Assembly: GCA_020891255.1 (NCBI GenBank)
Contig: BQFW01000009.1
Location: 186,001 to 250,000 of the forward strand
DNA from: Entomortierella parvispora E1425
Lineage: Eukaryota; Fungi; Mortierellomycota
Reading direction: 5' to 3'
Length of the DNA stretch: 64,000 nt
Shown: positions 11,023 to 51,000 of the stretch, piece by piece
How positions within the stretch are numbered: the first letter of the stretch is position 1
Layout of the letters: every line of letters starts with the position of its first letter
Notes under the pieces: generated by a model
Seen by the model: only the letters and a program-made list of their open reading frames with translations
What the model was told of the DNA's origin: nothing
The model's database searches: none
Position numbers and translations under genes: made by a program

Positions 11023-13966
11023 TTAATACTTGTGCAACGACAGCCACTCTGCCAATCCCTGCTCCTCACGAGCAACCCAGGCAGAGTTCACATTCAAGCC
11101 CTCAATGGCCTGATCCAACGCACGCTGGAAGTCCTTCGTGTCCTTGTCCTTGAAGAACTCCTGCACCTCCTTGATCAAGCTGGCATCCGAGGCCTGGGCC
11201 AAAGGGTACTTCACACACGCTCCCAACAATCCCATCGACGACTTGTAACGGTCAGACAACAACTGCCAGTTGGCCTTGACCCACTCCCACGTGGGCAAAC
11301 GGGCCTTGGCGTTGGCAGAGAGACCTGCCAAAACGTAGAGAATATCCTGGGGACGGACAGATTCCGAGATGGCAAGGGCCTGCACCTCGGCAATCAACTC
11401 TGGCTGCTGAACTGCTCCCAAAGCCAAGAGGGCAACAATCTCCTGATCCTGCTTGGGTGCATTGTGGAAGTACTTGAGCACCTGGCGGAACTCGTCCTCG
11501 CCACCATGCGTGAGCACAATCTCAAACGCCGTCTGGCGGATCGAGGGATGCAAGATAGACTCCTGGTTCGCGTCAGACACAAAAATCGCGAAACGACGCT
11601 TCGCCTCGGCCACTGTAGCCTCATGTCCTGCACGTCCGGCACTTCGGAGAATAACGTTGCGAAGACGGCTAGTCAAGTAATCCTCGCCTTCTGGGAACTC
11701 CCAACCGAGCTTAGTTACCATCCTGTCGACCAAGTTACGCTGGAAATGCTTGATTCCCTCGTTCACACGCTGGTTTCCTGCAAAGATGGAAGCAATCTCT
11801 CCCACACGTCCGTTCAACAACTCCCAGACAACATAAGTCTCCTCGTTCTTGTAGTATTGAACCAAATCCAAGAAGTTGCTAGTGGGGCTGTGTCCGGATT
11901 TGGCCAGGGATGAAATATCGGCAACCAAACCAGCACGATCGCTCAAGCTCAACAAGTCTGAGCCATCCAGAATGGCCTTTCCAATGCGGGTAATGGCGCT
12001 GGCGGGATAGTTGGTTCGGAACACGCCGCTGTAGTCCTTGTTAAACAAGTAGGCGCCCTCGGGTGCCTCGAATTGGAGCGAACGCGACTTGAGCGTCTGG
12101 TTAGGGTCCACGATCGAAGCGGGCTTGGGGTGGACGCCCAAGGGAACCCACCACACGGTTTCGTCATCCTCAGCCTTGACATCGTTGGTAGAAAGGTAGC
12201 GGTGCTGCTCCACGGAGACAACACCGTCGGTCTCGGTCACGTTCAAAATTGGGAGACCGATAACACGAGTCCAGGTGTTCATAAACTCACGAACATCAAT
12301 CTTGGATTCTTCAGAAAGAGCATCCCAGAGGTCATTCGTGGTGGCGTTCTTGTACTGGTGCTTCTGGAGGTAACGGCGGATACCAGCCAAGAACACGTCG
12401 ACTGTCAACCAGGTCGACAACATGCGGATGACGGAAGCACCCTTGGAGTATGAGATAGCATCAAAGATCTGGTGAATCTCATGAGGATCGTTGACAGGTA
12501 CCTCAATGGGATGAGAACTGCGAAGGGAATCCAGAGCGATTCCGCGCTGCATATCGTTGACAAGGAAAGTGGGCCAAGTGTCCCACTTGGGGAAGAGATG
12601 GTCTACAGCCAAAGTTCCGACCCAGGTGGCGAAACCTTCGTTGAGCCACAAATGATCCCACCACTCCATAGTGACCAAGTTTCCAAACCACTGGTGAGCA
12701 AGTTCATGCGCGACAGTTGAGGCAACCTGCTCCTTGAACCTCAAATCCGACGTCTTCTCATCAAAGAGCAAGGCCACGGTGCGGTATGTGACCAGACCCC
12801 AGTTCTCCATAGCACCCATGTCGAAATCTGGGACTGCGATTTGATCCATCTTGGGGAGAGGATAGGCGGTTCCAAAGATCTCTGAGAAATATTCGAGAAT
12901 CTTCGGTGTGATCTCGACAGCGAAGCGGCCCTGCTCCTTAAGACCAGGAAGGGTATATACACGGCAGACGACAGGCTTTTCCAACTTTGTGGTAGTGCTT
13001 TCGACGTACTCAAAATCGCCCACAGCCCAGGCAACGAGCTAGTAGACGAAAACAATACCAGTACAGTTAACATCACCATATTAACAAAATAATGCCCAAC
13101 AAGTCCTTTTGCAATTCTAAGACTGAACATACGTATGTGGACATGATTGGTGTCGTCTCGAAGTGGACGGTCTTCTCCTCAGGCTCCACCTGAGTGATCT
13201 GGGAGACGGGCATGTTCGAGAGAGCCTCCAACTCTACAGGGACGACCAATTTGATGGCAAAGGTTGCCTTTGCTGCAGGCTCATCCCAGCAAGGGAAGGC
13301 ACAACGGGCGTCAGTGGCCTCGAACTGAGTGACACCCATGTACTTTGTGTTGCCTTCACTGTCCTTGTAAGAAGAGCGGTAGAATCCATGCATTTTGTCG
13401 TTCAAAATTCCGTCATAGTTGACGCTGAGAACGGCCTTTCCTTTGGGAAGCTCAGACTCGAATGTAAAGGTCGATGTTTCGCGGTGCTCATCGTAGGCAG
13501 TGTCGACAGCCTCGTGGCTAGTCGGATCAGGAAAAGGGTTTGAAACCAGTTAATTCACTGAGGTGATAGAATTCCTCGAGCAAAACAGTGCAACAGTGCC
13601 TGGGTACAGTTTGGACATCCCAGCTACATAATCCAACAAAAACTTACGTCTTGTCATCAATCTCGACGCGAGCCCACTTCAAGGTCATCTCTTTGGTGTT
13701 GACCTGGATAGTTTTTGTTGGCTCATGGATATCAACACTAAAAGAGACGGTAACGACGGGACGTTAGGTTAAGGGCGACAAGACGACAGGAACAGGAACA
13801 AGAGGCGGAAGGAAAGACCGTGTGCTACGTACTTGATCTCGACATAGCCTCTGAAGGTGAAGGCCTTCAGGTCAGGAGAAATAGTGACGGTATAGTGCGA
13901 AGGAGTGACGTTGCTGGGAAGGACCACGCGGTCGGGATTGGCCGAGGCACCAGATTTGTTGCACAT
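11023..13966 (-). CDS. M1 family alanyl/puromycin-sensitive aminopeptidase (APE2/AAP1-like), paralog 1
   Basis: RVVLPSNVTPSHY N-terminus, TQFEATDAR, GAMENWGL, HELAHQWFGN...LWLNEGFA (HEXXH-18-E) and an ERAP1-like C-terminal domain. Confidence 0.95.
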
Positions 13967-14299
13967 GGTGGATTTTTGGAAAGGGATGAGATGAAGAGAG
14001 AAGCAGGCAAGAGGAGAGAGAGGGAAAAGAAGATGGGATTGGTCAGGAGAAAAGAAATGAATGAAGGAATTGCTTCCAAAAGGGGCATGGATGGCCCCTC
14101 TAAAAAAAAGAAAGTGGCTTCCTGCTCACGTACGCCATCGACTCTCGCGCTCTCTGTTTTCCAATTTCCCACGACGCCCCCCATCGATCCTCCGATCTGT
14201 TGAGGGCACAATTTTTGCCACCAATTTTGAACCTTTTTTTTTGCTTTATTTGTTTGCTCACGCTGAGCAGACACTGCGGAACTACTACACATGCATGCA

Positions 14300-17200
14300 C
14301 TAGTGGCCGTTCTCCACCAACCATTCCTCCAGGGCTGGACCGTCGCGCGAGACCCACTTGCAGCGGATGCGAAGAGCCTCCTTGGCTTGCTCCAGATCAC
14401 GGTCAAACTCCTTGACATCCTTATCCGCAAAGAAGTCCGTCAGGTCCTTGAGGATGGCCTCATCGGCCATGCGGCTGACTGGGATCTTGACCAAAAAGCC
14501 AAGCATACCCATGCTGCCCGTGAACCGCTCGTGCAGCGTTGCCCAGTTGCTCTTGATCCAGCTCCAGGCTGCATGACGGGCCTTAATGTTCATGGACAAA
14601 CCAGAAAGGACGTAGGGCACGTCTTGGGATCGCACCTCGCTCGACAACGCAAACTCAAAGACACGCTGAATCATCTCTTGGCCGTGGACAGAGGCTCCAA
14701 GAGCCACCAAAGTCATTGATTGTTGGTCCTGCTTGGGCGTGGTTCGGTAGTAGTTTAAGACCTGGTCAAATTCTTTGACTCCACCATGGGTCAAGGCGAT
14801 TTCGAAAGCGGTTCGGCGAACTGAGGCGTGCAGGGCAGCATCCTGGTCAGCCCCCTCCTGCATGAACAGCTCAAATCGTCTCAAGCCCTCTTTCACGGTT
14901 GCCTCATGGCCGGCTTTTCCGGCGGCTGAGAGGATGGAACCACGGAGACGGGTGGTGAGGTAATCTTCATTTTCGGGGAACTCCCATCCTAGCTCATGTA
15001 CCAACTTGTCAACCAGTTCGCGTTGGAAGTGCTTAACGCCTTCGTATGTACGGTCATTGACACTAAACAGCTGCGTGATGTTGTCCAACTTTACGAGCAA
15101 GAGGCCCCAAACACTACGAACGAACAAGAAAATAGAAAGGGTTAATACACTCTATTAAACGCCGTTTCAATGGATACTGTCCTGTGCCATAAAAATATAC
15201 TTACACAAAGGTCGTTTCGTTCTTGTAGTATTGAACCAAATCCAACAAACGCTTGACACTGCCATGTCCAGAGGTTGCCAAACTGGACTGATCAGCCAGG
15301 AGACCAGCACGGTCGGAAACTGCCAAATCGGGATGACCGGCCAGGATGGCCTGACCAATCTTGCGGATGGATTCACCCGAGTAGTTAGTGCGGAAAACAC
15401 CTGAAAAGTTCTTGTTGACCAAGAATAAAGAGGGCTCGCCATCCTTTGTCTGTGGGACCTCGAACGTCAAACTGCGAGTGGTCAAGGTCTGATTTGCGTC
15501 TTTGATTGAAGCTGGCTTGGGGTGGATACCCATGGGGATCCACCAAACGGTTTGGTCCTCGTCCTCCGTGACATCGTTTGTGGAGAGGAATCGATGCTGC
15601 TCTACCTTGATCACCCCATCTAATTCCTCGACATTCAGAATAGGGATTCCAATGACGCGTGTCCAAGTGTTCATAAACTCACGAACATCGACCTTGGACT
15701 CTTCCGAAAGTGCGTCCCAGAGATCATTCGTAGTGGCGTTCTTGTACTGGTGCTTTCGAAGGTAACGGCGGATACCAGCCAAGAACACGTCGACTGTCAA
15801 CCAGGTAGAAAGCATGCGGATGACGGAAGCACCCTTGGAGTATGAAATGGCGTCAAAGATCTGATGGATCTCATGGGGATCGGCCACAGGCACTTCAATC
15901 GGATGAGAGCTGCGAAGAGAATCCAGAGACAATCCTTGTTGGTATTCACCCACGACAAAGTTGGACCAGGTGTCCCAGGAAGGGAAGAGATGATCGACAG
16001 CCAAGGTTCCAACCCAGGTGGCAAAGCCCTCGTTAAGCCACAAATGGTCCCACCACTCCATGGTGACTAAGTTTCCAAACCACTGATGAGCAATCTCGTG
16101 CGCAACCACGTAAGCAACCTGCTGTTTGTAGGAGGCCGCTGATGTCTTGGGGTCATAAAGCAATGCTGTGGTGCGGTAGGTAATCAAACCCCAGTTCTCC
16201 ATCGCTCCGGAATCAAAATCAGGGACCGCGATGTGGTCGAGCTTGGCCAGCGGGTACGCGATTCCAAAGATCTCCGCAAAGTATTCCAAGATCTTGGGAG
16301 TAATTTCGAGTGCAAAGCGACCCTGTTCGACCAATCCAGGCACGGTGTAAACTCTGCAAACGACTGGGGTCTCAAGCTTGGTCGTCGTGGTCTCGATGTA
16401 CTCAAAGTCGCCAACAGCAAAGGCGACAAGCTAAAAAAAAAATAAAGAAAAAAAATCCCCAGCCCCAGAAACAAACAGGTTACACATCTTGTGGCGTGAG
16501 AATGGAATTGCAATTGAGCTTTCGTTTTGTGTTCATAGCCGGCAAACAATTGCCCCAGGAAACAAACTTACGTAGGTGGACATGATGGGTGTCTTCTCAA
16601 AGTACACAGTCTTGACGTCCGGTTCCACGGCAGTCATCTCCTTAATGGGTGTATTGGATAAGGCCACCAAATCGAATGGAACGACAAGAGCGACCGAGAA
16701 TGTGGCCTTGCAAGAGGGCTCGTCCCAGCAAGGGAAGGCTTGTCGGGCTGATGTTGCTTCGAACTGCGTCACAGCCATGTATTTGACGTTGCCGTCCTTG
16801 TCCTTGTACTGGGATCTGTAAAAACCATTCATACGGTCGTTCAACTCTCCTGTAAAGTCCAAGTCAAGAATGGCAGAGCCCTTTGGAAGCTCTTGGGGAA
16901 ACGTAAAGGTGACAACCTCCGAGGCAGTAGTCTCAATGCTTGTTGCCTTGTATCTAATGACAAGGAGGAAGAGACGCCGTGATTAATATGTGTCGTGCTA
17001 AGATATTGTTTTTTCGCGCATCATCAAAGGGGCCATCTTACGTTTCTTCGCCAATGATAACGGATGCTCTATCAACGACAAGTGCCTTGGCATTCACTTG
17101 GATGGTAGAGGTCGGTTCATGAATAGCGATGCTAAAATTGTTAAAATAAGGACCGTTGAGAAAACTGTTGCTGAGGACCTTAATAATCCGTTTGAGATTC

Positions 17201-17992: not shown

Positions 17993-18286
17993 GGTGAAGT
18001 GTAGGAGATTATTGTGTGGGTAAGAGTTGCATTTCTTTCGAGAGAGGGCACCCCTTTATATTTGAGAGGCTGACCTTGTCCGCCTAAACATTACCAACAA
18101 CCCTTGCTTTAGTCTGCGATAGAATGAGGGATTTTCGATTTTCCTTGTCCAATCTGAACCTGCATGAAGGGTAGGCCTGAGAAAGACCGAGACCGCAAGA
18201 CGCGCCTTCTGTCCGTCTGACCCACTTTTCTTTGGTAGTCTCCTCCCCACAATTGGTGAGGTTTGAAACACTGAATAAATTTATTT

Positions 18287-18503
18287 GAGTGAACGAATTC
18301 CCACCTCCCCCCGTCAAACATCACTGTGACGGGACGTCAAAATTTATTCTGAGCCCACTTTTGACGGCCCTCTTCCCCCGTCTGAGTTGTCAACTGCGCT
18401 ACTCTGACCCTCTCGCATCCCGTCAGAATGCTTCTCAGCACCTATTCCAACATGCCGTCAACGATTAAATTATCCCTTCATCTTACCACCGGTGAAAAAA
18501 ATC
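18287..18503 (+). repeat. Left TIR of the MULE
   Basis: Exact reverse complement of 27844-28060 when read by eye. Confidence 0.95.
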
Positions 18504-18510
18504 ATCCTTT

Positions 18511-19168
18511 TTATTCGACATTTTTTTCCAAGATAAAAATTGGTGGCAACTCTTCATCATGTTGCCGTTTTTTGGTCATTTGATAGTTTTGCTGTTCTTT
18601 CAGTTCTGATCTGAGATGTCTCAACGCCCATCGATGAACATAACAATGATACACGTCATACAGCATGAGACAGAGAGATTCGACGGAATGAGCAATAGCC
18701 AAGTGTAATACTACTTGAATATGGGCAGGGCAACATTCGAGGGCAGACTGGCCAGAGGCATTGAGGTAACGAAAAAGATCATAGGGGCGGCCATGGTCGA
18801 CTAGGCTATAGGCGAACATGGCTTGGCGTGGAGGGATATTTGTTAGGAGTTGAGGCCTTGGTCCAATTGGCTCTAGGGATGGCCCTAAGCAGAGATACAT
18901 GGGGAAATCGCTTACCGTATGTCAGCCTGCGTTCGTGACAGCACGCGTCTTGTATATCCTGATCTAGAGCCTGACCCGATATCTCACTTTATCACTTTAC
19001 CTCCAGCCTGTAATTCACAACAAGGCATATATTTCCTTCTTTTGTCCAGAGTACATCATACAATGAAAAAGATAAGTCACTAGTAATATCTTTCAGGCGT
19101 CTTATAGTCCAGGATATCTTTTTTTTTTTTTTTTGTAAGGATGACAAAGCCTCATACACAGAACTCAT
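18511..19168 (-). CDS. MULE cargo orfL: small spliced Cys/His-rich hypothetical protein; may have further 5' exons up to about 19993
   Basis: Exons about 19168-19082, 18963-18916 and 18823-18511 join in frame through GT..AG introns; no recognisable domain. Confidence 0.5.
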
Positions 19169-20242
19169 TGCTAATGTAGGAATGGTTGACGACAGGCGGC
19201 GTCTCCATGAAGGAAAAAAAAAAAAACTTAAAAAAAAGAAGAGGCGACGCGTATTGACGCGTGATGCGTGAATTACAAATCTAGGCGACATATGAATTAA
19301 GACAGATCATTGAAGCTGGTTCTACAATAAGAAGATATAATGCTTGCGGCTACTGCACGAGCTATCAATTAATACCTTCAGCAAATAGAAGTATATATAT
19401 CATCATAGGATAAAGATGGAAACAAGATGTAGATTTTTTTCTTTTTTTTTAAAAAAAAAGGCAAAACCCAAGACGAGTCCCCCAAGTACTCTGCGCGCGA
19501 GGGGCTGAAAGCCCCAACTGAGCCTCCGGAGGCCCACCAAAATCACCAGGGAGCTGACTGTTACCCTTATTCATTTTGTGGTGTCCTTTGGGAAGTTTGT
19601 GTGTTTGTGTGAGAGTGAAAGAGCGAATATCAGGTGAGAAACAAAAAAAAAAAAAAAAAAATCGACCGTCGATTTACCTTGCTGCTCTTCCTCCACCCTG
19701 TTTATCTTTCTTCGCTGCCGATCCACTCTTTCCTCGATTCCGGATCTACTGGCACCACAAACCGGGGCGTATACGACGGGTATAACCCCTTCACGGGTTA
19801 GGACTATCTTTTCTGCCAGTCTTTGGCAACGGTCAACTATATGTCGCTCTTGCAGTCTGATCGAGAATAGGAACATCAATATTGCATACGGGTGACTTTT
19901 GACCGAGTAAGACAAAAAAACAACAACTACCCTTCGTGTCTTCCCTGGCAGAGTGGCAGAGTGGCAGAATGCTGTGCCCGGGGTATATGCCACGAGTAGA
20001 CACGCTAGGTGTAGATTTTTTTTCTTTTTTTAAAAAAAAAGGCAAAACCCAAGATCGAACCCGGGTGATAACATACTATAACCCGCAATTATACCGCACT
20101 AAAAAAACCCAAATAAAACATGTGAGGAAAGTAAAAAATATAATTTAAGTACACTTTACGTATACGTATAGATCACGTTATTCACGTGACAATTACCGCA
20201 CATAGTCCTGTTTGATACGCATTTGCACCTCACCATAGCACC

Positions 20243-21609
20243 ATGTCCAACATCAACGCAAACAAGGACATCACCGAACGTCTCGAGCATTTCCGACATA
20301 TTTTCAGGGACCCAGAAGACGTCGAAAAACTTATCAGAACCACAAATTGCCCCAGCGATCACCTGTGTGAAGGTAAATGATAGTGTGTTCATTCCATTAA
20401 AATCATGACCTGTTTCATTAACCTCACCTCGATTTTACTTTGATGTACACAGCTGCACATGCAGTCAAGCATTCTGTCAATGGCAATCACTACTCAGGTC
20501 TTATCCAATCGAGCTGCCCCTCAAATCAGCGGCGAATCTTTTTGACGGTCCAGTTTCTGGTGAGACAGCTATCAGGGACTACACAGGGTGATCAGAAGGA
20601 GACTCTCCAAGGAAGTGGTGAGCTGTATGCTAGGCTTGCATCGGAGCTCGAGGTTGCGGAACCAAGCTTAAGAGGAGTGACGGCCCTAGCTTTATCGACC
20701 ACCGTGGAAAGAATCTCCCAGGATGTTCTCGAGCTTGACTCCTTGGCAGCTTTGGCACCATTCGATTCTATGTTTCAAACTTGTCATTTGAAGTACTGCA
20801 GGATACTCCGTGATATTGAGGCCACTATCCTTAGTGTCAGGCGGGATAAACGTGAGCTCACAGACCAGGAAAAGCAACAATCCCATGCTGCAGAGGTTAC
20901 AACGATCGTCCACCCTCCACTAAAGAGAAGAAGAGCAGTATGCATTGAGGACGATACGGCGGTGGGAAATGTTAGGCATGGCTTGGAGCCGGAGGAATAC
21001 GTGGCTCAACGACCTGATCAAGATAATATCGACAGCCAAGATCATCCGAAAACAGTGGTCTCCTCGGCATCATCATCGGTACGAAACCGACAGCCCACGC
21101 CAATATCAGTACTTATATCTGCGGCGCGACCACCTTCAATTCCAGCAGTCGCTTCTTCATCGACAGGAGCAAAAATGGGGACGGTGCCAGGCACTGAACG
21201 TGATATTCCCTCCAGTGTTTCATCTGAATCGGGCAATAGCTCGAAACAACAGCATCGGGGTGCCAATGGATCGAGGTCTCGAACAATAACTCTAGAGAAG
21301 AGATTGGACGATCTTCTCACTAAACAGCAAGGACAGCAAATGCTACAGGCGCTGCATGTAGTACAGCACGGGCAGCAAATGTCGCAACATAGCCAGCAAG
21401 AGATTTCACGAAAGGTCGATGCCATCCTTCTAAACTTACAACTCTTATCACAGGCGATAATGCAAAGGCTCAACGATGGCCAAGGCCCACACGAGTCTAT
21501 ATGTTGTGCCGAACATGCTACGTCCTCACGGCCACCTATATTTCCCTTACCAACAGTTACTCCGAGGACACCGCAACCTCAAGATCATTCGTTGAGCAGA
21601 CCAGAGTAG
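20243..21609 (+). CDS. MULE cargo orfM: about 430-aa hypothetical protein with an NLS-like motif
   Basis: ATG at 20243; intron about 20373-20451 (GTAAAT..ACAG) joins to the 389-codon ORF; PPLKRRR motif; Ser/Thr- and Gln-rich tail. Confidence 0.7.
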
Positions 21610-22138
21610 ACCTCTCTCTCCTTTGTCCAAGAGAAATTTCTTTATGTGTACATGTACTTGAGTTAGTGCGGAGCATTGAAGAGTCCAGAGTAAATATGTA
21701 CTGTACATAGTTTTTTTGTCACGCAGCCATATTTGGTCTTGCCGGCGACCCATGTGAGTGATTTTTTTTTTTTTTTTTTTTTGACAGAGCACCAATAAAA
21801 CTGGGCAGATTGCTCCAACGTCCTTCAAGTTGAAAGTCGGAGTTGTTCTTTCATCCTCGGAATTCTAACCGTGGACATCAAAGCTTGGGAACATGGCGAA
21901 AACACAGGGTCGTGAAAGAAAAATAAGCGCAAACTCTAATGACACACCATGCAACCATGCATGCGTGAAAATTTTTTTCGGACCTTCATAACGCGTTCCG
22001 ACACTGGGCGTGAAGGTGAAGTGGTGGCTGCTAGATGCATCCACTATGGACTTGGAAGACTTCTAAATCCCTTTTATATGTTGGGCTACATCCTCTTTCT
22101 CACCGCACCTTCTGCTCTTCCCTTCATTTTCTGCCAAT

Positions 22139-23320
22139 ATGCTGGACATTCCCCGCAATTCCACTTCATCTGCCAACCTTGTCCCTATAGACATAGAGAC
22201 CTTCCAACCCGCAGACTGCCCCATCGAATTGGGGCGCGTCTGGGTCCAAGACAAGACTTGCCAGGAGCTACTTGACTGGGCGAGGGTCAACGGTATTCCA
22301 TCAGTCAGTTTGGACGCCTTTTCCGTCGTTTCTCGGCCGCAAGGGGAGGTCTATAATCAGTACGATCTCAGCTCTCTTCGCACTATCCCCGGGAACGGTG
22401 ACCTGACCGATGCAAGAGAGGAGCTGAGAAAGCCCTCCAAAAGCCACTGTCGTCTTGTCATCGACGGCAAAACTCTGACACCTGAAGCGGTCAGATATTT
22501 GCCTCAGGTGATAGATACCGTAAAACGTATTGCCGATATCCGGAGAATGCTTACATGGCTCCAAGATACGGTTTTCCATTTCGATCCCGAGCTTGCAACA
22601 TCATTTGCGGATCTCCTACGCAGAAGCACTCTTGATACTCAGTTTGATCATTTGGGGCAACGCTTAAAGGTCAGGGATATTCTCGAATTCGCTGAGGAGT
22701 CGTGGCTGTCAGAGACTTGCGTGGATGCAATCATCTCATATTTCAAGCATGAGTATGGAGGATGTGACATCCTCTTCATTCCCGCCCGTTTTCTCTGGCA
22801 CCTTGAGCAATATGGGAGGTGCGAGATGGCCTTTGCTGACTGGGGTGGTGACATCACCTGGAAAAAGGAGGATCTTGCGCAAAGACTCTACAGAAGGGCC
22901 TACGGGATAGCCGGTATGGACGCGTGCCATTGGGGGGCTGTACGTATTGATCTCCAAGAGCCTGCCATTAAGTTTGGCGATTCCATGATGCAAGAGATTC
23001 CTACGCCGGCTATTGACGGGATCGTCCAGTGGCTCATTTGCAACATACCAGAGGAGACACAACAGTGGATGGATGCCGAAAGAAATGTCACGAGACTACC
23101 TGTTATTCGCCAAACTGACTTCGGTTCTTGTGGCATCCACGCTGCAGCCGCTATCGAGCAGGATCTGATGCGCGTCCGCAACTGTCCTGACGCAACCGCC
23201 TTTTACGACAATGATCACGGCAGCTGGGAGGGACAGATGGCTCATTACCATCGAGCGCGATACTTGAAGATCATTACGTCGCAATTGAAGGTAATAACAG
23301 TTACTTCTTCAGAGAGATGA
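22139..23320 (+). CDS. Ulp1/SENP-like C48 cysteine protease domain inside the MULE
   Basis: WLSETCVDAIISYF, HWGAVRID (His), GDSM (Asp) and QTDFGSCGIH (Gln oxyanion residue + Cys) give a complete C48 catalytic set. Confidence 0.85.
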   Translation: MLDIPRNSTSSANLVPIDIETFQPADCPIELGRVWVQDKTCQELLDWARVNGIPSVSLDAFSVVSRPQGEVYNQYDLSSLRTIPGNGDLTDAREELRKPSKSHCRLVIDGKTLTPEAVRYLPQVIDTVKRIADIRRMLTWLQDTVFHFDPELATSFADLLRRSTLDTQFDHLGQRLKVRDILEFAEESWLSETCVDAIISYFKHEYGGCDILFIPARFLWHLEQYGRCEMAFADWGGDITWKKEDLAQRLYRRAYGIAGMDACHWGAVRIDLQEPAIKFGDSMMQEIPTPAIDGIVQWLICNIPEETQQWMDAERNVTRLPVIRQTDFGSCGIHAAAAIEQDLMRVRNCPDATAFYDNDHGSWEGQMAHYHRARYLKIITSQLKVITVTSSER

Positions 23321-23740
23321 CCGTTCGACCATGCAAATTCTCCGCAAATGAAAAAAGGGACTTACATTCATATCGACTCTGCTTTTAAATACCCATTAGG
23401 ATGCACTGGATAGCACCCCGATCATGACAGCTTTGTCTCCAGCTCCTCCCGTTAGCATGCCAGCTCGTACGTAAAATAATGATGCCAACCTCATTGTATG
23501 AAGACCCGCAGTTCATTTACCGTTTCGCTCCAATTCGATTGATAGAGTCCGGCAACACCTCCAACATCATCGATTTTGGACCGTACTCCGATCTTAGTGA
23601 TTATGACGAATTGCCGGAAAGGTAATGGATTGTTGGCGATCGATCTTTTGTACCTAGATGCTTGACCTAAAATCGCTCTGAAGAAAGTAAAATAACCGAG
23701 GAAAAAATCTGTGGCCCTGGCCTCTTTCTTCGATCCATAG

Positions 23741-26736
23741 TGATCCTCTGACTAATGTCTCCGCAGACGAGTACCTCGTTGATATCACGACGCAGATGCC
23801 AAGCCAAGGCCAGACATACAGCTCTACTGCAAGCTTCGCTGGAAACGCCCTCAATACTGCCTTGGATGGGGTCCATCGCTCGGACGACATCAATGGCGGA
23901 GCCGAGCCTGCGCTTGGTGAAAGTGACAGCAGTGACAAGGTCATTGATGACTCTGAGGGAGTAGACCAGCCACTCACATTCCAGCAGTATGCATTGGAAA
24001 TGTTTGGCAGAAAGATCGAGGAGCTCGATGGAGAGCCATGGATGCCGAGTATCGATTTTAAGTTCATGGATCTGTCGGCCGCCAAGGAGAATATCAAAGA
24101 ATGGGCTATCCAGTTCGGGTTCAAAACAAGGACAAGAAGATCATCCAAGACCGCTGGTATGTATTCATATCCCATGTTGTAATCAAACTGGCCATTTCAT
24201 TTTTTTTTTCTTTTTCTAATTACTCCAAACATCAATTCTGTAGTTAAAATTGTCTGCAGCCACGAGGGGACACACAAAGCGAAGAAAGTTGATGATCCTG
24301 CCAAACACCGTGCTAGGATGGCCTCTCCACGTTGCGGTTGCGGCTTCTTCATCAACCTCACTTCACCCCGTCAGATGGGAGGTAGCTGGCGGATTAGTTC
24401 CTTCAAACTTCGTCATAACAACCATGAAATGGACGCAACAATGACGAAGTACACGGTTCTTGACAAGACTATGAAGGCTACCATCAAGAAAGGTTTCGAT
24501 CTGGACATGGGCGAAAGAATGACCATCAAGCTCCTCGAGTATGAATTCCCAGGGAATAAGTTCGACAAAAAGAAAAATCCGGAGCTATCTCAGGATGTGC
24601 GAAGCCAAGTTAGACGCGACGGTCACCTCGAGCCAAAGTGAGCGTCTCCTGACACTCCTGAACCAGCAGTCGTTTTCGGCCACTTCCGAGGAATGGTATT
24701 ATCAGGCAGACTACGACGGCTTTACTCTTAGAAGAGTCTTCTGGATGAATCCTACTCAGCGCGCGCTATACAGCCGATATTACGACGTTGTTGTATTGGA
24801 CGCCACTCTACAGACGAACAAACTTGGGATGCCACTAGTACTTATCATCGTCATTGACTGTGAATTCCGATCACGGCTTGTTGCCTGCGCTCTAACCCGC
24901 AGCGAAGCTGAGGAAGACTACAGGTGGATCCTTGAGCAATTGCGATGCGCCAGCGGAGGAGTCGATCCTGGCGTTGTGTTTGTTGATATGGATCCCTCAC
25001 TTGATGCTGCCATTTCACAAGTTTGGGAGCACACTCGCGTTATCAACTGCTTATGGCACCTGCGAAACAACGTTCGTGTGCGTCTTCAACGTGTTTTTGG
25101 TATTCGGAGGTTTGACCAGTTCAGTGTGCTCTTCGAACAAGCACTTGGAGCCCTTACACCAGGGGAATTTGAGAGAGTATGGCGCGATATACTCTCCAAT
25201 TTTGGTGGTGATGGAGATGGTATAGTTGTTCCTGGAAAGGCCCCTATTGACGACAACCCCCTTTATGGAGGAACAGCAGGAAGGTACCTCAAGCGGCTAC
25301 ACAGCAGGCGAGCACACTGGGCAGGACCTTGGATTCGAGCGCCATTTACAGCAGGAGTGCGATCCACGCAGCGTGCCGAAACCACCCACAGTGTCATCAA
25401 GCGATACGAAGTTACCAGCAGCACAACGCTTCCCGAACTCTTTGAAACTATTATGTCAAAGGTCGACAATGAAGTGTCACGGCCCAGACCAGAGGATATT
25501 CGTATTCTGACCGAGACCGAAAATGGAGGCATTGAGAGGACATTCCGTGGTGTTCTTTCGATCAACCGTGATCGCCTAAGCACGTATGCACAAGCCAGGC
25601 TTAAGATAGAGATGGCTGACTCCTTGACCCATATACATCGAGATGAGGATATCGATCGATTTCTCAGAGCACAAGTACCACATGCGGGGAGAAGTACAGT
25701 AAGTTAAGCTCCGCAAAGGAAATGAAGGCCAAAGCTGGAGTTCTACGTTCTAATTGCTCATCTATGTAGGTCACGGTTGATCAGAGGACTGCTGGTTCTG
25801 TTAGCGAGCTCATTGCGCGTGTCGATGTGGACAGCATTGAAAGCGTTTTTTCAGTCTTCGATAACAGTGCAAGAACGGAGATAAGGGACTACGTGATTCT
25901 TTTTCAAGACGGATCGTATTTTTGCACTTGCGTCCTCCTGCAGGGCGAAGGATTTGTGTGCCGGCACGTTTTCCGCCCTCATGCAAGTCGATGGTCGTTT
26001 CAAGTACAAAGTCGGTCTTATCTCTGCGAGGTGGTGTAGGCCTGATTTCGAAAGGGATGCTGCCACTGCTGTGGAGAGTGAATCTACTTCCATTTCAGCC
26101 GATTCAGTCTTGGCTCGGGCAACGGCTCGACCAAGTGCATCTGTCACGAAGCCAAATGATGAATCTATCCAAGCCTCCCAAAGATTTTATTGCCCCGAGC
26201 CAGTCGTCTCTGCCAGCAAGGCTACGAAATCAAAAAAAATCCGGTATTCGAAGGTCATGCAAGCAGCCAAGGGTCTTGTGAGCGATATTCTAATGCCTGG
26301 CGTGTCAGACACAGATTTCAAGCAAGTCATCGAGAACATCAGAGCTGCATCGTCATTTGTTCCACAAGTCACAAATGGGGCTTTACAGCATCCCCAACAA
26401 CAACAGCATGGGGATGGGCATACTGAAAAGAAAGAGGGCGATGCTCAAGACATATTCAAAGGTATCGACCCAGGGATGGTTATCGACGGTGACAAAGTTG
26501 CTACAAAAGGTAGACCGAGAAAACGCAGACTCAAGGCCAGCTACGAGTCCCCATCTCGTCGCCTTCGTTTATCGCGATCGAACAAGACAGAATTGCCGGG
26601 TGTTATCAAGAAAGGGAGAGGAAGGCCCCCTCGGAAAGATGCTGCGGTCCCACCTCGGAAAGGTGCTACAATCCCTCCCCCCGAAGGATGTTCAAGCCCC
26701 CCCGGAAAGTTGCTGCAAATCAAAAGGCTCCGGTGA
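23741..26736 (+). CDS. MULE transposase (FAR1/WRKY-GCM1 DNA-binding domain, DDE core, SWIM finger, AT-hooks) interrupted by two +1 frameshifts
   Basis: WAIQFGF...CSHEG...RCGC...HNNH; VLDATLQTNKLGMPL...FVDMD...CLWHLRNN...QRAETTHS; CTC...CRH SWIM finger; KGRPRK and GRGRPPRK; frame breaks at about 24570 and 25972. Confidence 0.9.
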
Positions 26737-27843
26737 TTCCAAGGCGATCTACACGGCTGACAAAAACTATGCCTTAGTTCACGTTTGGGTGCTCTCTATA
26801 GCCAGAGCACAGAGAGAGAGAGAGAGAAAGAGGGAGAAAGAAGGAGAAAGAAGGAGAGAAATTGCTCGTGTCCAAGGAGGGTTGAGATAATAAAACGAAT
26901 GGTCCTTCGCGCAAGATTCAATTGCATCAAAAAAAAATATCCCGAGGAGTCCAAAAATTTACATCGACCAACGGTGCGATCTGCCTCTCGCCGTTCACCA
27001 TAGTCTTATTGACAAGCAGTGTCTCATTTTCACTGGGAGTCATCCTATCATCCCCATGGCAGACGCAAAGAAAGTACCGCTCAAGAACAAGGGTAAAAAG
27101 AAAATGAAGGAAGGCACTGACGATGCTGGAGGAAAGCCTTTGCAGCTCAGGACTGCCCGTAAAACAGTCTTGGTTGACTACAAGGAGATCCCTGGCACAT
27201 CGAGATCATCGGCCTCTGCCTGGAGTTCTGCTTTGAATCTCTTCATCCAATCAATTTCGTAGTCACGTCGTGCCATCGCTGTTCTTGGAAATGGTGGAAG
27301 GGGGTGCTGGGGGAAAAGAAAGGTGGATAACATGGACGCGCGTTTGTCCAGGTGTGTGCGTATTACAAAAACAGACAATCAGAAAAAAAAAATCCCGCTG
27401 GCCTTCGCCCGAGCGTTGCAAAGTGGGGCAGACAGGCCGCACCTGCATAGTAATTGTCGCACATGGGGTGGTCAACCATGAAGGGGTGGACCAAGAATGC
27501 TCTAGTACATGTAGTTTGTTGCCATAAAACGTTTCATTCCTCTAGTGTGCCTAGACTGTTGTTGAGCAGAAAGCCCACTGAGGGTGAATTACTTTTTCAA
27601 GGTCACGACTGCTTTGAAATAATCATGGTTGAGGATACCGTTCGGTGAGTAGTTTCAGTCTGTCAGGCCCAAGAACAATCTTTAATGGTCTTTCAGAAAC
27701 GCAACTTGTCATCTCCATTTGGCCTGTTTGGCATATCGCCAAGCGTTGGTGAGAGAACAGCAATGACAGAGGGAGGTCATCAGACCTCACTATTTTTATT
27801 CTAGAGTAAGTTTACTTCGATAAAAGTATTCAAGAAAATGATG

Positions 27844-28060
27844 GATTTTTTTCACCGGTGGTAAGATGAAGGGATAATTTAATCGTTGACGGCATGTTGG
27901 AATAGGTGCTGAGAAGCATTCTGACGGGATGCGAGAGGGTCAGAGTAGCGCAGTTGACAACTCAGACGGGGGAAGAGGGCCGTCAAAAGTGGGCTCAGAA
28001 TAAATTTTGACGTCCCGTCACAGTGATGTTTGACGGGGGGAGGTGGGAATTCGTTCACTC
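27844..28060 (-). repeat. Right TIR of the MULE
   Basis: Reverse complement of 18287-18503. Confidence 0.95.
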
Positions 28061-28759
28061 AATTTATTTTAGGCTTTCTATTCTCACAAATGTTGGTGTT
28101 GAACGTTTGGTGGTGCAGATTGGACGCGTTGACCCCCTTGTCTCGGGACAGCCCTAGGCAAAAGCCTCATAACTTCATAATGCTTGTCTCATGGACCCTG
28201 TCTTATAGCTCCTGTCTAGCTGTAGTCTCGGAGTAATACCCTTGACTCTCAACCTGGCTGTTGCACTGGAGTGAAACGCTTTTTTTTTGCCGGATTTGAA
28301 AGCCGCTGCATATATATGTGACTTAAGGGGTACTCTTATTCGAAGATGTCCTCGTACATGTACGTGGACATGATCAGTCGACGCAAAAGTTGGGTTTACG
28401 TGGCTCTAGCACGCCCATGATGCTCGAGATCTTGATCAAGATCCCGGGTTCCTGATGGCATCATCCGAAAGCAGCAACTGGGGACTACTATGAGCCAAGG
28501 TACCAGGGCCCCAGGACCTCACCTTGCCACCGAAAAAGTCCTCCAATGAGACTTAAAATATCAACAAGTCGACCCCACGCCACCAACCTTACAGGGCTTT
28601 AACACGGGGGACCTATTTTAGCGGGTTTACACGGCTCTAGCACGAGGAACTAACTTTGGCGCTATAGTTCTCTGGATCCTGATCAAGGTGCCAGGTCCCA
28701 GAGTCCTTCAAATGATCATTACGCCGCCTTATTGGACCTAATTGACGGTGGCAAGGCGC

Positions 28760-48025: not shown

Positions 48026-51000
48026 CTATGGAGGAACTGGAGGACTTGGAAGACTTGGAAAGACCAACAAAGTCTGCCTACTATCCACCTTGGTTGACCC
48101 TTTTTTCGAGGCGGCGCCGCGGGTCGATGCAGCCTTAGAAGCCCCCCTTCCCCGGCCTCGGCCTCGTCCTCGCGTACTTGCGCTCGCAGCCGTTTCGTCT
48201 CTTGTTTTGGGTGGGTCTTTTGGTTTGAGTGGGTCTTTTGGTTTGGGTGAATCTTTTGGTTTGGGTGAATCTTTTGGTTTGGGTGGATCTTTTGGTTTGG
48301 GTGGATCTTTTGGTTTGGGTGGATCCTTTGGTTTGACTGGGTCTTTTGGTTTGGGTGGATCCTTTGGTTTGGCTAGGTCTTTTGGTTTGGCCGGGTCTTT
48401 TGGTTTGGGTGGTCTGCCTATCCTGCCTGTCCGTGGGGCACCACTTGCCGTTGCCTTTTTAAGACGATAAGCCTCCATCTCATACTCCAGCTTGTTATTT
48501 CGTCCGCTCTCACCTCTACGGAGCAAAGTGTTGTCAAGCCTGACTATTCCACCTGCAGACCCAGATGCCAACCATGCTGCTGAATGAAAACAATTGGACC
48601 ATTGAACCTAGCGAGAGGTCGAATACCAGTGAATTGGTCATTAGATTCCTGGCAAAACAAAAAATCGTGCATTCTCTGAAGCATATTAAAGACTCTCACT
48701 CTTTCTTACCTTTTGGATAGCCACATTTGGTGGGAAAAACATGATACTAGAAGATGCCTGGCTTACAAACTCCTGCTTCTCCTCTTCCTTGTATCGGAAT
48801 ACTTGCTCATTTCTTTGTTGAGCCTCATCTTGTATTTCCGAAACGTCATCTCCTGTGGAATCAATCCCTTTGGCGCTTTGCTCCTCCCCTTCTACCTTCT
48901 CAATCTGGTAGAGGTGGTTTTGAACCATTCCCTATAAGAAAAGATATTTATGAAACTCAGATCAATGAGACTCATCTTGCAAAACTTGCAGAAAAACGTC
49001 CATAGTCTTACATATCCACGCCTCGCCTTGTATGCTGGATTGGTCATGATCACCCTGCCATCGGAAACCGCAGCGGCAGCGAAAGGTTGATAATTGGAGT
49101 ACGACATGTCCCAAATAACTCCTTTTGAATTGAATAATTTGAAACTGGCGCTCTCTTGATAAAGCTGGTTAAACTTGAGACCATAATCCACATCTGCATA
49201 GGCCGTGCCCTCAGCCCAAGGTATCGCCATGGTCGACATTGGGACACCAAGAAACGATTTGATATCCAACGGAGCATGCGTGTCGCGCACATCAGTATAA
49301 CGCGTCCTGCCGTCATAACTTCCAGAAACGAGAATCCATGGGACAATGGACGCGTCGTTGTACCGCATCCAGTCAACACACCGAATACTGACATCATGCA
49401 CCTGCGGCGAGTAGATGGGATCAAGACACTCTAATGAATCGACGAAAGCGAGATTAGAGGTGTTTGAAAAGCTAAAAGTCGAGGATGGAACATGTCTGAT
49501 TTCCTTGTCACTGACTAACCTGCATCCTTCTCTGCCAAGCTTTCTTTCGACTGGCTAAGGAGCTCCTGGGTATCCCAAACATAAACGGTTCCGTTGGTGC
49601 CGGCAGCGGCCAGTCTGTCTGCCGAACCCCAGCTAATGCTCATGCAACAAATTTCCCCTACACGCAGCGTGACAAGTGGCTCTTGGTATTGTACTAGTGA
49701 CGCAACGCATTAAAATTAGAATTGACACTCCCAGCCGCAGTCGCCACGTAAAAAAAAAGGGTCACTCCTGCTTACTATAGATCACGTCATCCGCCCCCAT
49801 GGAATTGTCGCGATCGAGCTGGTTTCTTAGGCTGGTGGGGTCTGGGATACTAAAAATTCGGACGGTCCCATCACTAAATGTGGCGGCCAAGATGCCGAGT
49901 CTATCCAACTCCCCTAACCCTTCTCCCTTTGTTCAGAAAAAAGAGGCATCGGTTGAAATGTTAGCAGCTTGACATGCATAATGGCTGATTTACGAGGATA
50001 CAGACTCGACTTACTGCCTTCATCCGGTTTCCGTAAGGACACCATTTCAAGTCAAACACGGCGCCATAAGAGTGCAATATGCAAAGTGCTAAGTATGCGT
50101 CTGGCTTGCCTTGAAGCTCTCCGTCGTTGTTTGTGGTACAATTCATACGCCAGATCTGGATAACGTTGGGATGTGGGTCTTGCTTTCCTAAATAATAGAG
50201 CTGATCTCGCGACTGACAATTTTCATCCGTATCTGGAAATCCTCCAACAGCAATATAATCCATGTTTTCTTGGGGCTTGCCCTTGATGGTAGGCAGCGGG
50301 CACCAATCCAGACCCCAGACTGACAGGCCTGCGTTCAGCATATAAAAACTGTTCACACCAGGTTCTACAAAGAAAATATGGAGGGCAATAAGTCTCGGAT
50401 TTCGTGTATGCACTGCACAACTAGCGGACTCCAGGGAACTTGCTTACTCTCTGTCGTTTCCATGTAGTGTGATTTCAAGGCCTGAATATCCACAATCTGT
50501 TCGCGGGTGTGCGCTTTTGAAGTGGTCAGCAACGGCAGATACTCATCCAAGTCTGCGGGCTCTCTATGGAAGTGTTCATATCAACAAGCATCAGCGCATG
50601 GTCTTATGGTCTTGACTACGCAATCAAGAGGTCATCTTCACAATAAACCCTTACGTGACAACACGAAAATCCTTGATATTGCAATTAACGGTACAATGCA
50701 CGGGCTGTTCCAAAAGACTAGGTTGCATGCTGATACTAACAATATCATCAACAGTGGGTCCCTGATGAGCATCCTTCCAGCCTGCTGGTATAGCTGTCGC
50801 GCTGTTGAGTTCTCCTTTCTTATGAATTGGTTTCTTTTTCTTGAACGGCCTTGGATCGCGAACATAAGGCGAATATGGAGCCAGTTTGTCTTTGAGGGTT
50901 GTAGCAACAATTTCGACTCGATCCTCTGTGATGGGCAATGTAGCCTGCTTCGACCCTGCTCCCAGCGAAGGTGGACCCAACAGCCTGTCGACTTCCTGAC

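Follow-up and report, generated by a model that had tools for sequence, protein, structure and literature searches.

Evidence for a recently amplified, probably autonomous Mutator-like element with a Ulp1-type peptidase in Entomortierella parvispora E1425

Is the 9.8-kb insertion on contig BQFW01000009.1 of Entomortierella parvispora E1425 a young and mobile DNA transposon of the Mutator superfamily, and does the Ulp1-type peptidase encoded within it represent an accessory gene, captured cargo or a part of the transposase itself? The question is raised by a stretch of 64,000 nt (assembly GCA_020891255.1, positions 186,001-250,000 of the forward strand), hereafter termed the window, to which all coordinates refer unless another locus is named. 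A first-pass annotation made from the sequence alone had described positions 18278-28069 as a recently inserted Mutator-like element (MULE) with long terminal inverted repeats (TIRs), a 9-bp target site duplication (TSD) and at least three transcription units, i.e., a divergent orfL, orfM and a Ulp1/transposase unit. The analysis presented here makes it probable that the element is a very recently amplified, probably autonomous MULE of the Mutator superfamily, which carries two genes on the same strand: orfM and a transposase gene that would include the peptidase as its first exon.

Boundaries, copies and insertion sites

The element proper covers positions 18287-28060 (9774 bp) and is delimited by the following features:

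18278..18286, left copy of the TSD, AATTTATTT, identical to 28061-28069
18287..18503, plus strand, left TIR of 217 bp, beginning GAGTGAACG, 0/217 mismatches against the right TIR
27844..28060, minus strand, right TIR of 217 bp, reverse complement of the left TIR
28061..28069, right copy of the TSD, AATTTATTT, identical to the left copy

The perfect TIRs and the perfect TSD, previously noticed by eye, are both borne out by computation: TIR pairing extends over 217 nt without mismatch, identity drops away from position 218, and AATTTATTT abuts the TIR tips on either side. The span 18278-28069 given in the first-pass annotation is real, but takes in both TSD copies. The 9-bp TSD lies within the 8-11 bp expected for Mutator elements and the TIRs within their usual length of 100-500 bp; no further long repeat of the window touches the element region. 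Each TIR contains the motif TGACGG five times, in both orientations, as compared to about 0.12 expected occurrences. The observation of a MULE with perfect TIRs and TSD is confirmed.

An assembly artefact, or else a segmental duplication, could be suspected, as the assembly is Nanopore-based (SMARTdenovo and Nanopolish, followed by Pilon; PMC8759367) and contains errors within the element. Such an origin is given practically no credence. A set of short-read contigs from the same E1425 sample (X1), which is independent of the assembly, includes (i) a contig of 1045 nt that runs with 0 differences from the flank through the TSD and into the TIR for its first 27 nt, and (ii) the TIR as a contig of its own, exactly 217 nt long, with a depth of 629 (~8-fold single-copy). 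The depth of the element interior is 318-332 (~4-fold) versus ~79 in unique flank. Since a short-read contig spans the left junction and the TIR and interior depths agree, the arrangement is not an assembly artefact; the depths indicate about four copies and eight TIRs per genome. Three assembled copies with unrelated flanks and their own perfect 9-bp duplications exactly at the TIR tips likewise refute an artefact, a possibility that the first-pass annotation had named as one that would refute its reading.

The copies were reached via the annotated proteins P0002, P0151 and P0153. Besides the window's own locus on BQFW01000009.1 (L003), two further full-length copies (L001 and L002) were found on BQFW01000003.1, which have flanks unrelated to those of the window, the same perfect 217-bp TIRs and their own 9-bp TSDs (AAAAAAAAA and AAAAAATTA); further copies with distinct TSDs, as sought by the earlier annotation, thus exist. 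L001 and L002 are located ~52 kb apart in the same orientation, and their closeness on one contig hints at local transposition. The TSD bases of the three copies are A or T throughout (27/27), with a genome GC content of 49%. The three insertions are 294, 160 and 306 bp away from the neighbouring gene start, a proximity suggestive of the Mutator preference for gene 5' regions, as far as three sites can tell. Occurrence at three loci with unrelated flanks, together with ~4 copies by depth, speaks for mobility.

Comparison of the three copies revealed 17 differences, every one of them a homopolymer length difference or located inside a poly-A/T run; substitutions outside homopolymer or poly-A/T runs are absent among the three 9.8-kb copies. 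Near-identical copies, perfect TIRs and perfect TSDs agree with the previously proposed young age of the insertion. The words sampled from 20200-26200 are missing altogether from nine other runs filed under this species name. In strain X5, the flank is present with ~90-97% identity to that of the window, and a 1220-nt contig matches up to exactly 18286, the final base of the TSD, and then continues for 777 nt; the element interior is absent from the X5 contigs. X5 therefore appears to carry the empty site.

The element thereby becomes a candidate for a currently active DNA transposon in the Mortierellaceae, a family of oleaginous and plant-associated soil fungi. We know of no endogenous transposon tools for this family.

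Predicted structure of the transposase gene

The transposase gene is predicted from sequence comparison to be a multi-exon gene encoding about 1,350-1,400 aa, with the following parts:

22139..23290, plus strand, predicted exon 1 with the Ulp1/SENP-like C48 peptidase domain (Pfam PF02902); donor AAG/GTAATA at 23291
23291..23442, plus strand, phase-0 intron following the Ulp1 exon; acceptor at 23399/23400 (AUGUSTUS) or 23442/23443, both in frame
23443..24156, plus strand, exons for an acidic linker and the first half of the FAR1/WRKY-GCM1 domain; a further intron at 23621-23740
24157..24243, plus strand, intron of 87 nt splitting the FAR1 domain, GTATGT...TAG
24244..25698, plus strand, second half of the FAR1 domain and MULE DDE domain (PF10551); extra A at 24573 in this copy
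25699..25769, plus strand, intron of 71 nt, GTAAGT...TAG
25770..26736, plus strand, last exon with a SWIM-like CxCx10CxH motif, followed towards the C-terminus by a tail bearing two AT-hook-like GRP motifs; extra C at 25976 in this copy

The MULE domain matches PF10551 with 7e-18 (65 bits, cutoff 27.6), and the spliced sequence matches the FAR1 family PF03101 with 8.2e-8 (33.3 bits, cutoff 28.1). The residues D87, D149, C170xxH173 and E280 of the DDE domain (numbering of the 388-aa open reading frame, ORF) are present and were conserved in at least 90% of 60 homologues, the threshold applied for residue conservation. The C-T-C-x10-C-R-H motif aligns with the SWIM region of homologues. In an exhaustive protein search, the MULE ORF is 100% identical to the annotated protein P0002; a word-indexed protein search retrieved only P0001 with the MULE ORF and no match with the Ulp1 ORF, and look-ups of exact products of the raw window ORFs gave no match either. 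Plant WRKY-type relatives of the FAR1/WRKY-type domain bind a TGAC core. Together with the five occurrences per TIR, this makes the TGACGG motifs candidate binding sites of this domain.

The Ulp1 ORF (22139-23320) scores 23.4 bits with PF02902 (Peptidase_C48), just above the gathering score of 20.7. Since phmmer with the single Ulp1 ORF yielded no match among PDB sequences, a three-sequence profile was required, built on an alignment (A3) of the full-length peptidase ORFs of the window and of the relatives L005 and L006 (n=3; 27-31% identity). This profile matches SENP1 with 2.4e-7 over almost the whole catalytic domain and yeast Ulp1 with 6e-7. The triad His264, Asp281 and Cys331 is invariant in A3 and aligned with the SENP1 motifs, whereas the oxyanion Gln is kept in the window and L006 and replaced by Pro in L005. 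An AlphaFold model of the Ulp1 ORF was too poor for a fold search (mean predicted local distance difference test score, pLDDT, of 37.5).

The association of the peptidase with the transposase is not restricted to E. parvispora. All relatives with sequence upstream of the FAR1-MULE part were examined, i.e., L005 (soil metagenome), L006 (Logan) and L008, L009 and L010 (metagenome), and all five possess a Ulp1 homologue upstream of FAR1-MULE on the same strand. The homologues of L005 and L006 are 27-31% identical to the Ulp1 ORF of the window over nearly their entire length (E 2e-36 to 2e-38), those of L008-L010 30-38% identical over partial matches. A GT donor at the homologous phase-0 position is found in six family members (window, L005, L006, L008, L009 and L010). 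The in-frame junction could be read in five of these (window, L005, L006, L008 and L009), with an intron of ~80-90 nt in the four relatives; L010 has the same GT donor and a longer intron. The more distant relative P0080 consists of one uninterrupted ORF of 1257 aa with C48 followed by MULE, and the AUGUSTUS prediction of the depositors, which used complementary DNA input, places a single gene of 1247 aa across 22139-26736.

Every relative examined has the peptidase ahead of the transposase, the two being linked either across a conserved phase-0 intron or within one ORF. The peptidase therefore very likely constitutes exon 1 of the transposase gene and would be ancestral to this MULE clade rather than captured cargo. 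Retention of the triad across relatives, the transposase core of which is 32-43% identical to that of the window, provides good comparative evidence for a functional ULP domain as opposed to decaying cargo. The accessory gene supposed by the first-pass annotation thereby probably gives way to a domain of the transposase. Of the at least three transcription units, orfM is real and orfL lacks support (see below); Ulp1 and transposase most likely form one gene.

An arrangement of Ulp1 and transposase as two tandem genes in the manner of MuDR or VANDAL, with the peptidase as a stand-alone accessory protein, is considered distinctly unlikely. It would accord with the Ulp1 ORF having its own ATG (22139) and stop (23318-23320), with the 476 bp between this stop and the in-frame ATG at 23796, and with the separate ORFs that gene callers report for L005 and L006. 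Metagenome ORF callers, however, cannot model introns, and the inter-ORF gap of ~90-100 nt in L005 and L006 corresponds to a canonical GT...AG phase-0 intron that restores the transposase frame. The same intron is present in L008 and L009, its GT donor occupies the same position in L010, its position is homologous in A3, and P0080 dispenses with it as one ORF.

Three structural peculiarities of the relatives were observed in passing. The post-peptidase intron of L010 is enlarged by a ~150-bp palindromic insert (L010:4460-4680) resembling a miniature inverted-repeat transposable element. L005 contains a second, more divergent C48-like ORF (L005:6650-7372; 25% identity, E 4e-9) ~1.1 kb upstream of the peptidase-transposase gene. 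Complex subterminal inverted repeats of L005 (4691-4864 and 14609-15374) suggest an element size of ~10.7 kb.

Frameshifts and probable autonomy of the copies

Read literally, the window copy has two breaks in its transposase frame. P0001, which aligns continuously across two frames, reveals an extra A at 24573 (A5 run), while P0027, P0053 and P0102 reveal an extra C at 25976, in the interval from the SWIM motif to a conserved segment ending in RW. L001 has the same extra bases at both positions, whereas L002 lacks both and its frames run through there; L002 has indels of its own, i.e., an extra T at 23573 and an extra G at 25161. At 22342, L001 and L002 have G5 versus G4 in the window, G5 breaking the N-terminus of the peptidase. 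A C-run at 26696 has three different lengths in the three copies, which leaves the true C-terminus of the transposase uncertain. No frame-breaking state occurs in all three copies. Programmed +1 frameshifting at 24573 and 25976 is rejected, as L002 is devoid of the extra bases.

These frameshifts could be real, in which case the copies would be non-autonomous, with a dead transposase gene, and would recently have been amplified in trans by another MULE. In line with this, the breaks at 24573 and 25976 are common to the window and L001, those at 23573 and 25161 are particular to L002, and every assembled copy is broken somewhere. Such a scenario is nonetheless unlikely: (i) 17 homopolymer-associated differences against 0 substitutions elsewhere are typical of Nanopore error and not of mutation, (ii) a single C-run shows three lengths in three copies, (iii) the catalytic residues are all intact, and (iv) a fraction of 0.98 of the sampled 31-mers of 20200-26200 is found in the short-read contigs, with ~3-5 discordant sites, the missing ~2% fitting 3-5 assembly errors. 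Moreover, Nanopore assembly with Pilon polishing leaves multi-copy DNA, such as these repeats, poorly corrected. The frameshifts are therefore regarded, with good confidence, as likely uncorrected Nanopore homopolymer errors, and the copies, read in this way, are probably identical and autonomous.

Several points weigh against a recently mobilized, autonomous element with a fused peptidase-transposase: (i) the empty site of X5, for which the first-pass annotation had proposed to search, rests on the end of a contig match at 18286, i.e., the match ends exactly at the TSD and the interior is absent, while the rejoining of the right flank was not seen; (ii) with a divergence of 5-10%, X5 may belong to another species; (iii) each assembled copy, literally read, has a broken transposase frame, and the extra bases common to the window and L001 could mark a real non-autonomous lineage; (iv) the Pfam SWIM family was called neither on the spliced sequence nor on the intact L002 frame; (v) splicing, fusion and expression are inferred from sequence comparison and third-party gene prediction; (vi) the Ulp1 ORF terminates at a stop of its own, 27 nt past the proposed donor; and (vii) the ORF of the FAR1 exon has an ATG at 23796, which would allow two separate genes.

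The public models of the other two copies, GJJ70201.1 (1320 aa) and GJJ70186.1 (1500 aa), both named 'zinc finger SWIM domain-containing protein 3', are chimeras of orfM, peptidase and transposase, in which invented introns step over homopolymer indels and skip conserved segments. These chimeric models would result from the probable homopolymer errors. Multi-copy elements in this Nanopore-based assembly seem to keep such errors, and other findings on this genome may be affected as well.

The second gene, orfM

Upstream of the transposase gene and on the same strand, orfM is composed as follows:

20243..20372, plus strand, orfM exon 1; the spliced translation equals EMPS_06738 (P0153) exactly
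20373..20452, plus strand, orfM intron of 80 nt, GTAAAT...CAG
20453..21609, plus strand, orfM exon 2 including the stop; coding sequence the same in 3 copies

As a two-exon gene of 428 aa annotated as EMPS_06738, with a coding sequence identical in the window copy, L001 and L002, orfM is judged to be a real gene on the basis of its structure, and the transcription unit earlier assigned to it is upheld by the match of its spliced translation. The predicted layout comprises a helical N-terminal domain, a disordered middle part with a KRRR motif and a Q-rich, long C-terminal helix. The searches retrieved a single homologue, a partial protein from Gryganskiella cystojenkinii (Mortierellaceae) with 54% identity over residues 53-172. 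No family was assigned by Pfam, a metagenome scan for orfM relatives retrieved none, and orfM is absent from L005 and L010, both of which extend several kb upstream of Ulp1. With a mean pLDDT of 38.9, the AlphaFold model is too poor for a fold search, and a protein language-model atlas returned only Myb/SANT-like leads (0.80-0.84), which are below the reliability line and were not relied on. orfM is a lineage-specific protein.

According to the first-pass annotation, the element may carry a counter-defence module, and orfM, with or without the peptidase, would then act as an anti-silencing factor like VANC of Arabidopsis VANDAL21. An intact, intron-containing gene that is identical in three copies, a KRRR motif resembling a nuclear localisation signal, a conserved N-terminal domain and the Myb/SANT-like leads mentioned above would be compatible with such a role. 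In copies this young, however, sequence identity is no sign of selection, and orfM has no family, fold or homologue of known function, nor did the metagenome scan add any homologue. Its absence from L005 and L010 means that the clade does not need orfM. VANDAL21/Hiun (vanA, vanB, vanC) is likewise a multi-gene MULE, but VANDALs are not known to have long TIRs, as opposed to the perfect 217-bp TIRs found here, and orfM has no match of known function and is absent from related elements. The VANDAL analogy fails on the TIRs and is without sequence support; an anti-silencing function of orfM is accordingly rated as very unlikely.

Comparison with known elements

MULEs with extra ORFs are well known, examples being mudrB, mutB, vanB and vanC. 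Ulp1 domains occur in Mutator elements or their transposases in hydra, lancelet, Arabidopsis, maize, rice and melon and also in Ginger1 (PMC2836005), and C48 is a standard accessory domain of fungal cut-and-paste transposons, with MULEs recorded in Mortierellomycotina (PMC5751038). The claim of the first-pass annotation that the element is unusual in its lineage is therefore weak. In a eukaryote-wide survey of MULEs, in which Ulp is unmentioned, the Mucoromycota are represented only by MULEs with one ORF, 40-bp TIRs and 10-bp TSDs (PMC6446971).

The Arabidopsis KI-MULEs, VANDAL20, the melon CUMULE and MuDR-type elements of hydra and lancelet (PMC2836005) likewise have a Ulp1/C48 domain inside a Mutator element, sometimes within the transposase. 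Compared by description with these ULP-carrying elements, the present one differs in its host (Mortierellomycota), in the peptidase forming an N-terminal exon set off by a phase-0 intron, and in the additional orfM. Maize MuDR shares TIRs of ~215-220 bp starting with GAG, a 9-bp TSD, insertion near gene 5' ends and a second gene beside the transposase (in part PMC6446971). Its genes are, however, convergent and driven by the TIRs, whereas here both genes have the same direction and 1.95 kb of the element precede orfM; MURA, furthermore, is not known to have a Ulp1 domain.

The domain order FAR1/WRKY-GCM1, MULE DDE and SWIM-like finger is shared with FAR1/Jittery-type MULEs and with ZSWIM1-3 (PF03101, PF10551, PF21056 and SWIM), to which the present transposase adds the N-terminal C48 peptidase and the C-terminal AT-hooks; it belongs to a mobile element rather than being a domesticated gene. 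MULE-Mucorales and MULE-Ag, also MULEs of early-diverging fungi with a SWIM transposase (PMC6446971), have 10-bp TSDs, 40-bp TIRs and one ORF. The present family differs in its 9-bp TSDs and 217-bp TIRs, in the peptidase joined to its transposase and in its second gene. Hydra Ginger1 also combines transposase and Ulp1 (or OTU) peptidase domain in one fusion (PMC2836005), but belongs to another superfamily with a Gypsy-integrase-like transposase, and its peptidase is C-terminal. ULP-carrying MULEs are thus already known, and what is particular to the present element is that the peptidase is N-terminal and set off by a conserved intron, that the TIRs measure 217 bp and that orfM is lineage-specific.

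Proposed mechanism of transposition

In the proposed mechanism, the FAR1-type domain would recognise the five TGACGG motifs of each TIR, and the DDE domain would excise the element and reinsert it into A/T-rich target sites of 9 bp, some hundred bp away from gene 5' ends. During transposition, the peptidase domain may strip SUMO, or a modifier related to it, from a protein of the host or of the transposon. As a culturable fungus, E. parvispora offers a system for testing the role of the ULP domain.

A more far-reaching version holds that the Ulp1 exon is kept intact across the clade since removal of SUMO or NEDD8 is obligatory for transposition, and that orfM serves as a nuclear partner against silencing. 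The targets would then be a host chromatin, repair or silencing protein, or the transposase itself. There is little likelihood of this version being correct; if it were, the ~four identical copies in a culturable fungus would represent a tractable system for the role of transposon ULP proteases.

Subterminal regions and neighbouring sequences

The regions between the TIRs and the two genes are:

18504..20242, left subterminal non-coding region (area of the proposed orfL); no gene model in 3 annotated copies
26737..27843, right subterminal non-coding region; GA-rich microsatellite at ~26806-26860

The left 1.95 kb of the element is characterized by poly-A/T runs and much low-complexity sequence. 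Its longest ORF has 140 aa, the minus-strand ORFs look non-coding, and the orfL area has no gene model in the three annotated copies and no credible Pfam match. A spliced minus-strand gene was considered and rejected in view of ORFs of at most 140 aa and the absence of a family match, and orfL as a divergent transcription unit is abandoned.

A 48-bp direct repeat (19426-19473 and 20013-20060), composed of a T-run, an A-run and GGCAAAACCCAAGA, brackets ~590 bp of the left region. Its second copy adjoins a motif on the minus strand that resembles a tRNA T-arm (GGGTTCGATC; region 20055-20110); scans of the element with ARAGORN (for tRNA) and Rfam made no calls. In X1, the piece 19596-19920 reaches about twofold depth, and X5, which lacks the element, contains it as well. 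This piece thus occurs outside the family and could be a nested repeat resembling a short interspersed nuclear element, or a captured fragment. No host gene was identified as its origin, as would be expected of a Pack-MULE, by searches of Pfam and Rfam and by further searches.

The right region contains an unannotated ORF of 68 aa (27056-27262), starting with MADAKKVPLKNKGKKK, the frame of which is shifted in L001 and L002 by a homopolymer difference. This basic ORF was rejected as a mudrB-like gene, as it has no family match, is unannotated and is frame-shifted in two copies.

Shortly before the insertion, the minus strand at 11023-16343 encodes a tandem pair of M1 aminopeptidase genes (874 and 873 aa). 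Both genes also precede the element in L003, which identifies L003 as the locus of the window. The pair shares 72-79% DNA identity at a distance of 3392 bp (repeats 12095-12394/15487-15786 and 12749-13041/16141-16433) and is an old tandem duplication. Farther downstream, at 48162-48448, the window harbours an array of ~11-16 copies of an 18-bp unit, which probably codes for a hexapeptide repeat.

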